Origin: Macrostomum lignano
Taxonomy: Eukaryota
Assembly: GCA_002269645.1 (NCBI GenBank)
Contig: NIVC01000300.1
Span: 124,001-188,000 of the forward strand
Direction: 5' to 3'
Length of the DNA stretch: 64,000 bases
Shown: positions 10,642-39,683 of the stretch, one piece after another
How positions within the stretch are numbered: position 1 is the stretch's first letter
How the letters are laid out: every line of letters starts with the position of its first letter
The notes under the pieces: generated by a model
What the model saw: the letters and a program-made list of their open reading frames with translations, nothing else
Database searches by the model: none
Told to the model about the DNA's origin: nothing
Program-made: the position numbers and the translations under genes

Positions 10642-10765
10642 ATGATAAGGCGGCCCAGCTTCCACTGGCTGCTGCTGCTGCTGCTCTGGTCACAGAGTTT
10701 ATCAGCTGTTTCGGCCGAGTCTGACATTGTGGCGTCTCTGACTGTGCTGTCAACCAGCAGGGATG
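10642..10765 (+). CDS. Mosaic VWA gene exon 1 (signal peptide)
   Basis: MIRRPSFHWLLLLLLWSQSLSAVSAESDIVASLTVLSTSRD, then donor gtgagg, phase 1. Confidence 0.8.
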
Positions 10766-37700: not shown

Positions 37701-39683
37701 CTCATGGGATGGGGTCTCTAATGGGATTGAGTCTCATGGGATGGGTTCTCATGGAATGGGGTCTCAAGGGATGAGGTCTCTCATTGGATGTGGTCTCTCA
37801 TGGGATGGGGTCTCTCACAGGATGGGGTCTTTCATGGGATGGAGTCTCTCATGGGACAGGAGATTCCTTAAAGAATGGGATTCCCGATTGGATGGGATCT
37901 CTGACTGACGGGAACGGACCTGCGGTGTGATGGGATCTCTCATGAGATAAGATCTCTGTTGGGATTGGGTCTTTCATGAGAACAAATCTCTGAGGGGTTA
38001 TAGACCTAAAGGATTACGACATTTGGCTGGATGGCATCCCTTAAGATGGTATCTACGGTGGGATGGGATCTCCGCTTCGATCTCTCATGGTGGCGCTGGT
38101 TAGGCGGATACCACATGCATCTGGTCGAACAAGATGGGATCAGGGATCAGGGACTCTGAACTGGCTCAGTTTGTTGATCAGTGCCTGTTGAGCATCTCGC
38201 AGGAAAATGTTGAAGAAAGCTCAGTCTCAGTCTCTCCAAGGATCGCTCAGTCTCAGTTCACGGAGCAGCAATTGGAAGCGCTGGGAAGATGGAGACAGCA
38301 TGGATTCTGGAGATGTTTGCCATCCGAGCGTGAAACCCAAGCGGCCATTGTGCAGCTCCATTGTTTCCCTGTGGCTGGAAAGAATGGGACAAATTGCAGA
38401 CAGTCCCCATGCAGTGTGTGCAGGGGTACACACAGCACTGCAGAAGCAGCTGAACTATCAAAAAGTTGTGTGGTTTTAATCCCGCTACGGAACTGGAAGG
38501 ATTTTCCTGCTTGAGCCAGTGATTCCTCCCTTTAGGAACATTTCTAACAAATTGCTTCAAAGGCAAATTCGAATTTTTTACTAAAACTTTGTTAGTTTGC
38601 CAGTAGAATTCTGAAGCGCCTTCATGTCTGGGGTCTCTCAGAGTGAATTCAATATCTATTTGAAATTGAACATTTCGAGCGCCTGACTGGAATTTCTTGC
38701 CAGTCTCTTTTTTGATGGTTTTTAAAACATCAGTTTGAGAACCCGTGACTGCACCTCGGCCGATGCTTGCTTACTTTGCAGTTCGAAACAGGGTTGGACA
38801 TTGTCAGCTAGTAACCAGCCGCTCGGGAAATTTCCCCATGTTAACACACTTTAACTAACCGATGTACTTTAACTAGCCTATGTACTTTAACTAGCCTGTG
38901 TACTTTAACTAGCCTATGTACTTTAACTAGCCTATGTACTTTAACAAGCCTATGTACTTTAACTAGCCTATGTACTTTAACTAGCCTATGTACTTTGACT
39001 AGCCTATGTACTTTAACTAGCCTATGTACTTTAACTAGCCTATGTACTTTAACTAGCCTATGTACTTTAACTAGACTATGTACTATATCCAATCCAGGGT
39101 GCATCGGCGAGTGTCCCGAGCCCGGGACCGCCTGCCCGCTCTGCTGCCTCTGGCTGACCGCCAGGCAGCCTCGCCGACCGCTGCCGGCCCGTCGCCAGCA
39201 GAGCTCCGCCATCGCGCCCTCCGCCGCCTGACGCTGGGCGTTCGCGAGCTCCGCAAGCTGCACCGCGCGCTGTTCGCCGCACACCGGCTGACCTTCACCA
39301 GCCTGCAGCCCGCGCTCGGCCGGGCCCGCGGCGCCCAGCTGGACCGGCTGGACCGCAGGCTGCGCGACTTCGCCGCCATCCGCCTGGCGGTGACCAAGGC
39401 CTACTCGGCGATGGCCATCCCGCCCGATCGGCCCAGCTTCGTCATGTCGGACTCGGTCACTTCGGAGCCTCTGGACGCTTACCTGGCCGCCCTGCTGCGA
39501 GCGGCGGGCGCAGCAGCCAGGCTGCCGGCCCAGGCCCGCTCGGTGGCGGCCGCGCACCCTTCAGCCGCGGCCGGCTTGAAGAAGCTGACGCCCAACCTGC
39601 TGGCCGCGGCCGCCAAGGTGCGCCGCGCTGCTAGCAGAATGCGGCGCCGCCTGCGGCAGTTCAGAGCGATGCCGCGGAGCTGA
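10642..39683 (+). CDS. 14-exon secreted mosaic extracellular protein (~1591 aa): signal peptide, VWA, CXCXC/Cys-rich, TIL, VWA, Cys-rich repeats, VWA, SEA-like, Arg-rich tail
   Basis: Exons 10642-10765, 12285-12534, 16667-17091, 17628-17864, 18538-18660, 19604-19708, 19786-19890, 20650-20877, 23420-24013, 24788-25198, 28311-29207, 30964-31257, 36736-37132, 39098-39683. All junctions are GT-AG and phase-compatible, totalling 4776 nt. AATAAA near 40073. Linkage of the last three exons rests on phase alone. Confidence 0.8.
10850..11470. repeat. CT-rich ~26-bp minisatellite (intron 1)
   Basis: ctccagctccatcttccttctcccct units. Confidence 0.9.
12285..12534 (+). CDS. Exon 2: VWA1 N-terminal half
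   Basis: CSQKADIFFALDSSHSVG (MIDAS DxSxS)...FRFGVVIFSD; ends at GC|gtgggt, phase 2. Confidence 0.9.
12690..13520. repeat. ~39-40-bp minisatellite with TATAAA in each unit (intron 2)
   Basis: ctcctataaatgtacacagatactttgacaaccccctca alternates with a cgcagccattgggac variant. Confidence 0.9.
14325..15600. repeat. Polypyrimidine (CT-rich) array (intron 2)
   Basis: Direct reading. Confidence 0.95.
16130..16590. repeat. Degenerate AT-rich ~20-bp repeat (atcgaaaatcgataactgat)
   Basis: Recurrent atcga(a/t)a motifs. Confidence 0.7.
16667..17091 (+). CDS. Exon 3: VWA1 C-terminal half
   Basis: FKSGKTATGEAF...VVVLLTDGRANG...VLAIGIG...VIGVLC; acceptor ttcccag, donor gtgagc. Confidence 0.9.
17101..17597. 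repeat. Two adjacent minisatellites in intron 3: 21-bp (17101-17280) and 32-bp (17306-17597)
   Basis: ggtcatgagcgtgtcagcatt units; cagtcacgtgactaaatcgctatcagtgccat x9. Confidence 0.95.
17628..18660 (+). CDS. Exons 4 (17628-17864) and 5 (18538-18660): CXCXC-type Cys-rich repeats
   Basis: CRKACPAGKKLNAARCRC and ECKSKCPGPNFTQAAEDCRCDCLMRCRPGMALNKAACEC; both are symmetric phase-1 exons. Confidence 0.85.
18010..18460. repeat. Telomere-like (GGGTTT)n/TTAGG mixed array (intron 4)
   Basis: Direct reading. Confidence 0.9.
18730..19500. repeat. (GATT)n-derived array with 24-bp higher-order unit (intron 5)
   Basis: gatagattgatatattgacagatt units followed by gact/gatt tetramers. Confidence 0.9.
19604..19890 (+). 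CDS. Exons 6 (19604-19708) and 7 (19786-19890): short Cys-rich repeats
   Basis: DCPPEFEYFNGRCRPVVPKLCPDGQVLFRDVCKR and DSCPKGYELRRDRKCYRTGCDPGFKRTKEGGCKK; both 105-nt phase-1 exons. Confidence 0.85.
19891..20575. repeat. (GTGA)n microsatellite starting at the exon 7 splice donor
   Basis: AAAAAGA|gtgagtgagtgagt... Confidence 0.95.
20650..20877 (+). CDS. Exon 8: TIL (trypsin-inhibitor-like) domain
   Basis: CGPRQYFRVRASGCPRTCAEP...CPKDPAPGCVCQPYFLLHKGACVHPSECP. Confidence 0.85.
20965..21475. repeat. 22-bp minisatellite (gtgggtttcagatgagttggtt)
   Basis: Direct reading. Confidence 0.95.
22405..23300. repeat. 30-bp minisatellite (gtgggttttaccacactttctagtcttttg)
   Basis: Direct reading. Confidence 0.95.
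23420..24013 (+). CDS. Exon 9: VWA2
   Basis: CIEKADVVFMLDSSLTV...HRVGVIRFN...TFLGEAL...VTILLTDG...FVTIALG. Confidence 0.92.
24015..24762. repeat. (TTAG)n microsatellite filling intron 9
   Basis: Begins within a few bases of the gtgagt donor and ends ~25 nt before the acceptor. Confidence 0.95.
24788..25198 (+). CDS. Exon 10: three ~45-aa Cys-rich repeats
   Basis: Recurrent (R)CACP-x7-C-x~19-C-x~10-C modules; phase 1 at both ends. Confidence 0.85.
25600..25912 (+). pseudogene. Decayed partial duplicate of exon 11 inside intron 10
   Basis: The central ~140 nt nearly match 28480-28622 (aacggcaag...gccttcgtcattgactcgtc), with deletions on both sides and no usable splice sites. Confidence 0.85.
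26155..26385. repeat. 42-bp minisatellite, ~5.5 copies
   Basis: ccagctcaagttggactgactgaagtccattgccgtggccaa. Confidence 0.95.
26868..27149. repeat. 12-bp repeat (gccttggctgtc)n
   Basis: About 23 near-perfect copies. Confidence 0.95.
28311..29207 (+). CDS. Exon 11: two Cys-rich repeats plus VWA3
   Basis: CPKPVSKAGPC...CSCPKP...CSKRTDLAFVIDSSDSV...HIALLKYSS...TYTGDAL...VVLVTDGASN...IVTIGVG; donor gtgagt at 29208. Confidence 0.92.
30257..30770. repeat. 64-bp tandem repeat, ~8 copies
   Basis: gcttgcaaaacaggcggcactgttgcaaacattgcaatcgtgcagcactgttccagaatatcca. Confidence 0.95.
30964..31257 (+). CDS. Probable exon 12: SEA-like module
   Basis: Acceptor ctgtccgcag, donor gtaagt, symmetric phase 1, open reading GFKLIRD...MRAALSDALRVHPFSIVQLRLRP...LVAAGKFRFSWSGATFRIDPESL. 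The fold call is by eye. Confidence 0.6.
32504..32783. mobile_element. MITE-like element with ~80-bp terminal inverted repeats
   Basis: 32504-32583 is the reverse complement of 32705-32783 with few mismatches. Confidence 0.7.
32995..34640 (+). mobile_element. Copy 1 of a TIR element, one end lost, with a 20-bp satellite expanded inside (33095-34170)
   Basis: Flanks match the reverse complement of 58811-59360; the array is (aatttggtccaacaagcatc) x~53. Confidence 0.75.
36425..36700. repeat. ATCCC-type repeat upstream of exon 13
   Basis: Direct reading. Confidence 0.9.
36736..37132 (+). CDS. Probable exon 13: Arg-rich helical region
   Basis: Acceptor caccacag (phase 1) is in frame with ORF 36777-37136; donor CG|gtgagg is phase 2. 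Confidence 0.7.
37180..37850. repeat. 17-bp minisatellite (gggatggggtctctcat)
   Basis: Direct reading. Confidence 0.95.
38855..39085. repeat. 18-bp minisatellite (actttaactagcctatgt) abutting the exon 14 acceptor
   Basis: About 12 copies. Confidence 0.95.
39098..39683 (+). CDS. Probable terminal exon 14: Arg/Ala-rich helical tail
   Basis: Acceptor aatccag with phase 2 matching exon 13; GC-rich open frame to TGA at 39681-39683. Confidence 0.7.

Follow-up and report, generated by a model that had tools for sequence, protein, structure and literature searches.

A transcript-supported gene of Macrostomum lignano encodes a polycationic, disulfide-rich secreted protein with three VWA domains

The stretch of the Macrostomum lignano genome analyzed here (hereafter the window: 64,000 nucleotides, contig NIVC01000300.1, positions 124,001 to 188,000) contains, at 10642-39683 of its forward strand, a real, constrained and transcript-supported gene, Mlig006812.g3 (BOX15_Mlig006812g3), which encodes a secreted, disulfide-rich, polycationic protein with three VWA domains, each bearing a metal-ion-dependent adhesion site (MIDAS). 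The gene is already in GenBank, where its product is named "hypothetical protein" (PAA85947.1), yet it is uncharacterised. In its N-terminal part, the protein comprises a signal peptide, as read from the sequence, VWA1, five C-x3-C-x9-11-C-x-C units, four short Cys hairpins, a TIL domain and VWA2, followed in the C-terminal part by five four-Cys repeats of ~45 residues, VWA3, a small alpha/beta sandwich and an Arg-rich tail of ~330 residues. By sequence comparison, this combination, with its two cysteine-repeat modules and its cationic, predicted helical tail, defines a small unnamed family.

Positions 8642-41683 of the window are byte-identical to NIVC01000300.1:132642-165683 of assembly GCA_002269645.1 (Mlig_3_7). 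The original prediction, made from the DNA letters, had placed at this locus a single secreted modular protein of ~1590 residues, encoded by 14 predominantly phase-1 exons between 10642 and 39683. The flatworm origin assumed in that prediction is correct. Both end coordinates are exact, with 10642 being the first in-frame ATG and 39683 the end of the stop codon, and the stop-to-stop frames of the forward strand hold every piece that had been listed. The exon count and protein length, on the other hand, had to be revised. A 14-exon, 1595-residue model with GT-AG sites picked by phase, which we took as an approximation of the predicted one, matched a deposited protein in a protein search with 96% identity and full coverage; we dropped it when the alignment to the deposited proteins exposed a missing 72-nt exon (29827-29898, phase 1-1) and three shifted splice sites (exon 6 acceptor, 19604; exon 6 donor, 19708; exon 8 acceptor, 20650). 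The corrected coding sequence has 15 exons, 4866 nt and 1621 residues, shows 0 differences from PAA85947.1, and has GT-AG borders at every intron (14/14). The M. lignano annotation was made from RNA-seq using StringTie, TACO, the TBONE boundary pipeline and TransDecoder (PMC5730564), and the gene model is therefore transcript-supported, at the level of the deposited model, which we inspected in place of the reads. As had been claimed, the exons are largely phase-1 modules: 12 of 14 introns are in phase 1 (introns 2 and 14 are in phase 2), 10 of 13 internal exons are symmetric 1-1, and, assuming 30% phase-1 introns, the probability of at least 12 in 14 is 2.5e-5. The modules mostly match exon limits, with the TIL domain corresponding to exon 8, VWA2 to exon 9, and the hairpin pairs to exon 6 and exon 7. 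The features of the locus are as follows.

10642-10765 (+): exon 1, residues 1-42; start codon (first ATG in frame after a stop), signal-peptide-like MIRRPSFHWLLLLLLWSQSLSAVSA and a short acidic linker; donor GTGAGG; N-terminus identical to PAA85947.1
12285-12534 (+): exon 2, residues 42-125; first half of VWA1 (Pfam VWA), MIDAS DSSHS at residue 54; enters in phase 1, leaves in phase 2
16667-17091 (+): exon 3, residues 125-267; second half of VWA1 (GKTATGEAF, LLTDG) and a 35-residue basic linker
17628-17864 (+): exon 4, residues 267-346; three C-x3-C-x9-10-C-x-C units, recognized by Cys spacing, with no Pfam match
18538-18660 (+): exon 5, residues 346-387; two further C-x3-C-x10-11-C-x-C units
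19604-19708 (+): exon 6, residues 387-422; two C-x10-C hairpin-type units; splice sites set by identity with the deposited protein
19786-19890 (+): exon 7, residues 422-457; two C-x11-C hairpin-type units
20650-20877 (+): exon 8, residues 457-533; TIL domain (Pfam PF01826), 10 Cys
23420-24013 (+): exon 9, residues 533-731; complete VWA2 between Cys534 and Cys727, MIDAS DSSLT
24788-25198 (+): exon 10, residues 731-868; repeats 1-3 of the unclassified ~44-50-residue four-Cys unit (C-x-C-P-x-P...C...C)
25631-25904 (+): pseudo-exon in intron 10, outside the coding sequence; degraded, incomplete copy of exon 11's 5' part
28311-29207 (+): exon 11, residues 868-1167; four-Cys repeats 4-5 and VWA3, MIDAS DSSDS
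29827-29898 (+): exon 12, residues 1167-1191; QILRKAQAQGVDVDWKKFGFSKLN, 72 nt, phase 1-1; acceptor ttgccag|AA, donor G|gtgagt; found in the deposited proteins and retained in the paralog
30946-31257 (+): exon 13, residues 1191-1295; core of the unclassified alpha/beta domain, as predicted from an ortholog model
36736-37132 (+): exon 14, residues 1295-1427; first half of the tail rich in Arg, Ala and Leu, with a furin-type RKKR (residues 1378-1381)
39098-39683 (+): exon 15, residues 1427-1621; second half of the polycationic tail and stop codon
40073-40078 (+): candidate polyadenylation signal AATAAA, 390 nt past the stop codon

Using exon 10 alone as the query of an exhaustive phmmer search against 1.84 billion representative proteins, we found only four true relatives: the protein's own cluster, the M. 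lignano paralog P0028 (A0A1I8HJC7; 55-58% identity), and two orthologs from other sources, P0021 (a 4842-nt transcript contig of SRA run SRR8820788) and P0022/P0024 (a 4154-nt JGI contig of sample 3300078644). One further match, P0023, was dismissed as a low-complexity, Thr-rich bacterial sequence. A word-indexed search with the family alignment retrieved collagens and two M. lignano clusters and nothing else; it missed P0021 and P0024, which marks the limit of that index. The order of the first cysteine region, TIL, VWA, second cysteine region, VWA, alpha/beta domain, helices and cationic C-terminus is kept in P0028, P0021 and P0024, and from the first cysteine region to VWA3 every cysteine is invariant among the four family members. 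P0021 and P0024 are uninterrupted open reading frames (ORFs) with untranslated regions and are cDNA-like. Each of them carries the core architecture in one reading frame, and the transcript-derived M. lignano models keep one gene; a fusion of separate genes is thus ruled out for the model, in agreement with the original prediction. Their tails are Lys/Ala-rich, in contrast to the Arg-rich tail in M. lignano, yet they are cationic, and the cationic C-terminus is thus a conserved character and no accident of GC-rich sequence.

The M. lignano assembly contains three ~98%-identical copies of the gene, Mlig006812 g1, g2 and g3, of which g1 lies on NIVC01000299.1 and g2 on the same contig as g3, in the opposite orientation (NIVC01000300.1 52158-103416, reversed; window copy 132642-165683). 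The 5' ends of g2 and g3 face each other across ~40 kb, with a synonymous divergence (dS) of ~0.034, a layout explained by either inverted segmental duplication or the joining, during assembly, of homeologous stretches of the neopolyploid genome. Compared with g2, g3 is 98.6% identical, with 70 substitutions in 4866 nt and zero indels over the 15 exons; intron lengths, in contrast, differ in 13 of 14 cases, by -867 to +1852 bp, with many gaps. The Nei-Gojobori ratio of nonsynonymous to synonymous divergence (dN/dS) between the two copies is 0.24 overall and 0.34 in the tail. The introns are full of minisatellite and microsatellite arrays (e.g., 10770-11590, 14290-15630, 19890-20560, 33080-34180 and 37170-37900), which give long spurious ORFs on both strands and probably lie behind much of the length difference between copies. 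About 850 bp upstream of the VWA gene, the window has an LSM (Sm-like) gene of one exon (ORF 9471-9794, +), and such a gene also precedes the other copies (8823-9155 in the g2 region L001 and 849-1157 in the g1 region L004; Pfam LSM was recorded for both), and the duplicated block therefore covers at least the LSM and VWA genes.

These comparisons bear on whether the locus could be an annotation artefact, in which a VWA gene is fused to an unrelated GC-rich open frame (exons 14-15), or a decaying duplicate. The tail is indeed low in complexity and GC-rich, with long ORFs on the opposite strand as well, there are three nearly identical copies, and intron 10 holds a decayed exon fragment. This fragment (25631-25904) is a pseudo-exon rather than an alternative exon: it aligns to 28374-28699 with 76% of nucleotides identical, it has lost the conserved cysteines of repeat 5, and its frame breaks just after VIDSSD. 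However, the deposited models are transcript-derived, exons 14-15 have canonical, phase-correct splice sites and are free of indels relative to g2, against length differences of 762 and 304 bp in the introns beside them, and their dN/dS is the 0.34 given above. Furthermore, the equivalent of exon 14 is kept in the paralog, and in the orthologous cDNA contigs the same reading frame also encodes a helical, cationic C-terminus. We therefore regard an artefact or decaying copy as largely refuted and very improbable.

Three stretches of the protein match the Pfam VWA profile (PF00092; E 6.8e-101; score 336 bits, cutoff 23.8), and matches to this profile are present in all four family members. The MIDAS sets are DSSHS/GKTATGEAF/LLTDG at residue 54, DSSLT/GLTFLGEAL/LLTDG at residue 545 and DSSDS/GSTYTGDAL/LVTDG at residue 969; in VWA2, Thr replaces the last Ser of the first motif. 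All three are complete (D-x-S-x-S, downstream Thr and downstream Asp), and a metal site is predicted in each. In sequence searches of the PDB, VWA2 and VWA3 match collagen VI alpha3 (1e-45 and 1e-82, respectively) and then the mussel byssus protein PTMP1, proximal thread matrix protein 1 (6e-29 and 7.5e-27). The fold of these regions was judged on an AlphaFold2 (AF2) model of ortholog P0022 (882 residues), which has a mean predicted local distance difference test (pLDDT) score of 63.7 and a pLDDT of 70-87 in the VWA regions. Foldseek matches of this model in the PDB are mostly VWA proteins, with PTMP1 at the top (E 1.4e-17) and with integrin I domains, von Willebrand factor (VWF) A domains and collagen VI among the others; collagen VI N2 and integrin I domains align to the P0022 VWA regions with template modeling scores (by target) of 0.76-0.86. 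The VWA regions are thus predicted to adopt the Rossmann-like alpha/beta fold. Between VWA1 and VWA2, one TIL domain (PF01826) scores above the gathering cutoff (29.7-33.7 bits against 24.5, E 4e-8 to 7e-7), with a full-length match (1-55/55); the TIL region (residues 457-532) has 10 Cys, and TIL was matched in all four family members. The three VWA domains, the TIL domain and the three strings DSSHS, DSSLT and DSSDS named in the original prediction are accordingly all present, each string with a downstream G-x-T...A[LF] and [LV][LV]TDG. No Pfam family other than VWA (three times) and TIL was detected at E<=10 on isolated segments or over the four family members, and no characterised family matches the architecture, for which no named family had been recognised.

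Residues 271-456 make up the first cysteine region, in which five C-x3-C-x9-11-C-x-C units precede four C-x10-11-C units. The literal string CxCxC occurs twice (residues 343 and 363), as CRCEC over the junction of exons 4 and 5 and as CRCDC in exon 5. The claimed resemblance to CXCXC repeats stands in its spacing but not as a family assignment, as the Pfam CXCXC model (PF03128) has no match at E<=10 on the isolated region or at E<=1 on the four family members, and the likeness to Balbiani-ring proteins and VEGF-C is one of spacing alone, which by itself cannot establish homology. Compared with the CXCXC/Balbiani-ring-3 repeats of the VEGF-C tail, for which we take the spacing to be C-x10-C-x-C-x(1-3)-C, residues 275-384 contain C-x10-11-C-x-C-x-C twice and C-x9-11-C-x-C five times, but here an additional C-x3-C stands ahead of each unit. 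The second cysteine region, at residues 728-955, comprises five units of ~44-50 residues with the pattern C-x-C-P-x-P-x5-C-x19-25-C-x10. In the P0022 model, every unit of the second region is a short strand plus a long beta-hairpin (pLDDT 65-75), and the first region is poorly predicted. PDB sequence searches with both cysteine regions, the C-terminus and a profile of the second region gave nothing beyond chance matches to snake three-finger toxins (E 0.02-0.08), and a metagenome scan with the second-region alignment found no relative. Both modules are, by these searches, unclassified and have no relatives detectable outside the four-member family, and for this reason they may be new small disulfide folds.

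The domain after VWA3 had been called SEA-like. In an AF2 model of P0025, a 365-residue C-terminal fragment of an ortholog (mean pLDDT 63.3), it is predicted to form a beta-alpha-beta-beta-alpha-beta(-beta) sandwich (pLDDT 65-86), followed by four long helices and then a terminal K/A-rich helix. The SEA domain of MUC1, agrin and enterokinase (PF01390) resembles this region in that the ortholog has a predicted sandwich of ~100 residues after its last globular domain, and in that the window copy has G-S-V between the second and third strands. However, no Pfam family, SEA included, was detected at E<=10 for residues ~1148-1308, and Foldseek with the P0025 fragment gave no match at E<=1e-3: the top matches are generic or unrelated ferredoxin-like folds (E 0.05-0.2), and the match to the Gpr126 extracellular region is weak (E 0.21, probability 0.66). 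Across the family alignment, the conserved G|SVVV autoproteolysis motif of SEA domains was not found between strands 2 and 3; QSG-SVRL is confined to the Mlig006812 copies, the aligned strings being SG-LVR in the paralog and NNS-FEV and KKR-IFI in the orthologs. In view of the absent SEA profile match and the unconserved G-S-V string, we term the domain an unclassified alpha/beta domain.

The cationic tail (residues 1296-1621, 326 residues) contains 60 Arg, 11 Lys, 25 Asp and Glu, 69 Ala and 46 Leu, with an isoelectric point (pI) of 11.95, in line with the original prediction. The mature protein has a pI of 10.06, a net charge of about +134, concentrated in the tail, and 69 Cys; Tyr makes up 1.8%. 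No 19-residue window exceeds the Kyte-Doolittle hydrophobicity threshold, and no membrane anchor is predicted in the 1621 residues, which, together with the signal-peptide-like N-terminus, is consistent with the secretion that had been claimed. The part of the tail encoded by exon 14 is recognizable in paralog P0028 (RPLRRL..., YI.YF.R), and exons 14 and 15 are not internal repeats of one another. A word-indexed homolog search with the C-terminal 470 residues returned nothing, not even the protein itself, which reflects the limit of the index. The furin-type RKKR at residues 1378-1381 raises the alternative of a pro-protein, in which cleavage at this site by a furin-type convertase would free a polycationic C-terminal fragment of ~240 residues with an activity of its own, e.g., polyanion binding or antimicrobial action, and the VWA part would act separately. 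The site adjoins an N-G-S/Gly stretch, paralog P0028 has RAKR at the aligned position, and in P0024/P0025 the low-confidence loop that leads into the K/A-rich terminal helix (model residues 307-322) contains KRRR/KKRR; in contrast, P0021 lacks such a site at the aligned position, and, with 18% Arg in the tail, chance alone should produce basic tetrads. We consider such processing improbable.

Instead, we infer, at every functional step, that this large polycationic secreted protein serves as a multivalent cross-linker or scaffold of extracellular material, a reading in which we have moderate confidence. The three VWA domains of the collagen-VI/PTMP1 type, each with a complete MIDAS, would bind protein partners; the disulfide-rich repeats would act as stiff spacers between them; the C-terminal helical region may self-associate; and the strong positive charge would hold the protein to polyanionic partners, e.g., sulfated or acidic glycans. 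The original prediction had inferred a structural protein of glue, mucus or an egg capsule; a gland-secreted structural role and a tissue-matrix role are both plausible. Because the family is lineage-restricted and highly cationic, however, secretion from a gland (mucus/rhabdite, cement or other glue) is somewhat more likely than a place in the general tissue matrix. A role as quinone-tanned eggshell precursor is argued against by the low Tyr content. Two identities with known M. lignano secretory products were also rejected: the VWA transcript of the egg-shell or cement gland, RNA815_13, is 16,136 nt long and has a different N-terminus, and the adhesives Mlig-ap1 and Mlig-ap2 use VWD, C8, lectin, EGF and TSP1 domains rather than VWA (PMC6410801).

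Several observations weigh against the cross-linker reading. No expression, localisation or binding record for Mlig006812 was found in the literature, and the identifiers Mlig006812 and Mlig011403 are not mentioned in the main texts or in the part of the supplements that was covered. The AF2 models, of moderate confidence (mean pLDDT ~63), represent orthologs rather than the M. lignano protein, whose tail helicity and self-association are inferred from composition and a low-identity alignment; its putative signal peptide is likewise read from the sequence. VWA1 is absent from both non-M. lignano orthologs, P0021 and P0024, so the three-VWA design is not constant in the family; either the M. 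lignano lineage gained VWA1 or the domain was lost elsewhere. Finally, dN/dS between g3 and g2 reaches 1.4 in the alpha/beta-domain region (residues 1151-1295), a value derived from five substitutions only.

Comparison with known systems also bears on the alternative of a tissue-matrix protein. Collagen VI N-terminal VWA arrays, matrilins and AMACO (VWA2) are, like the Mlig006812.g3 protein, secreted and built of several collagen-type MIDAS VWA domains with small disulfide-rich spacers. The matrilins, which oligomerise through a C-terminal coiled-coil, also share an alpha-helical C-terminal region; in the ortholog model, long helices are predicted there. The protein could thus be an interstitial or basement-membrane matrix adaptor of this kind, made by ordinary tissue cells rather than a gland, which we rate as the less likely reading. 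Its best sequence matches outside the family are collagen VI, collagen XII and VWA2 (AMACO) proteins, and VWA domains parted by small Cys-rich modules and followed by a helical C-terminal region mirror the matrilin design. However, the Pfam EGF and collagen profiles have no match in the protein or its family members, and EGF spacers, the collagen triple helix, Kunitz, FN3 and other matrix-family domains are absent; their place is taken by a TIL domain, two kinds of unclassified Cys repeat and the polycationic tail. Moreover, the restriction of the exon-10 repeat to four family members in the phmmer search is unlike conserved core matrix proteins, and the extreme basicity is atypical of such adaptors.

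On the side of secreted structural products, mussel byssus PTMP1 is likewise a secreted structural protein of tandem VWA domains, but it has two of them and lacks Cys-repeat rods, TIL and a cationic tail, and the match to it reflects the VWA domains alone. Mlig-ap1 and Mlig-ap2 are large, secreted, Cys-rich modular M. lignano proteins with TIL, and Mlig-ap1 has extremely cationic Lys/Arg-rich regions (PMC6410801). They differ, however, in being 5-15 thousand residues long and in carrying VWD, C8, C-type lectin, EGF, LDLa and TSP1 domains in place of VWA (PMC6410801). No sequence relationship with them appeared in the protein homolog search or the exon-10 phmmer search, TIL being the sole shared domain. 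Domains of the VWF, gel-forming mucin and hemolectin type (VWD, C8 and the C-terminal cystine-knot, CTCK) have no Pfam match in the protein or its relatives.

Elsewhere in the window, a 157-residue single-exon ORF on the reverse strand (43475-43948) has a signal-peptide-like start, followed by some nine tandem repeats, each closing with SPRLGKK (mostly KKAWYVSPRLGKK). It has the look of a neuropeptide precursor that would yield AWYVSPRL-amide, the C-terminus of which resembles the arthropod pyrokinin/PBAN FXPRL-amides. A 124-residue gene was called at the syntenic position beside copy g2 (L001 44429-44968), and no link of the strings YVSPRL and SPRLG to the flatworm literature was found. An apparently intact coding region of a long terminal repeat retrotransposon lies at 46401-50347 (-), with a 245-residue gag-like ORF (49610-50347) followed by a 1071-residue pol ORF with motifs of protease, reverse transcriptase (RT), RNase H and integrase (46401-49616). 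At 1418-3392 (+), broken-up retroelement ORFs, RT/RNase H-like and integrase-like, end in a PVRR/PVHR peptide-repeat tract, and the Cys arrangement of a 226-residue ORF at 3812-4492 (-) recalls a PAN/apple-type module (CSFVCSRRPDCFGFYWLVEACRLFDF).

Among flatworms, M. lignano serves as the principal model for studies of reversible bioadhesion, regeneration and reproductive secretions; of its adhesive proteins only two are, to our knowledge, characterised, along with a few gland markers. Multi-VWA secreted mosaics are common in animals; the recognized parts of the Mlig006812.g3 protein are ordinary, and current understanding is not overturned. We tentatively propose, as a possibility rather than an expectation, that it is the first known representative of a family of polycationic VWA cross-linkers not described before, known to date only from M. 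lignano and the sources of P0021 and P0024, with two Cys-repeat modules of its own that have no detectable relatives beyond the family, and that it forms the structural matrix of a flatworm gland secretion (rhabdite/mucus, cement or a second glue component). A strongly cationic secreted protein with three MIDAS sites would naturally partner the polyanionic glycoconjugates of mucus, cement or glue, and, if it is gland-expressed, it would represent a new VWA-based, PTMP1-like class of components for flatworm secretions.

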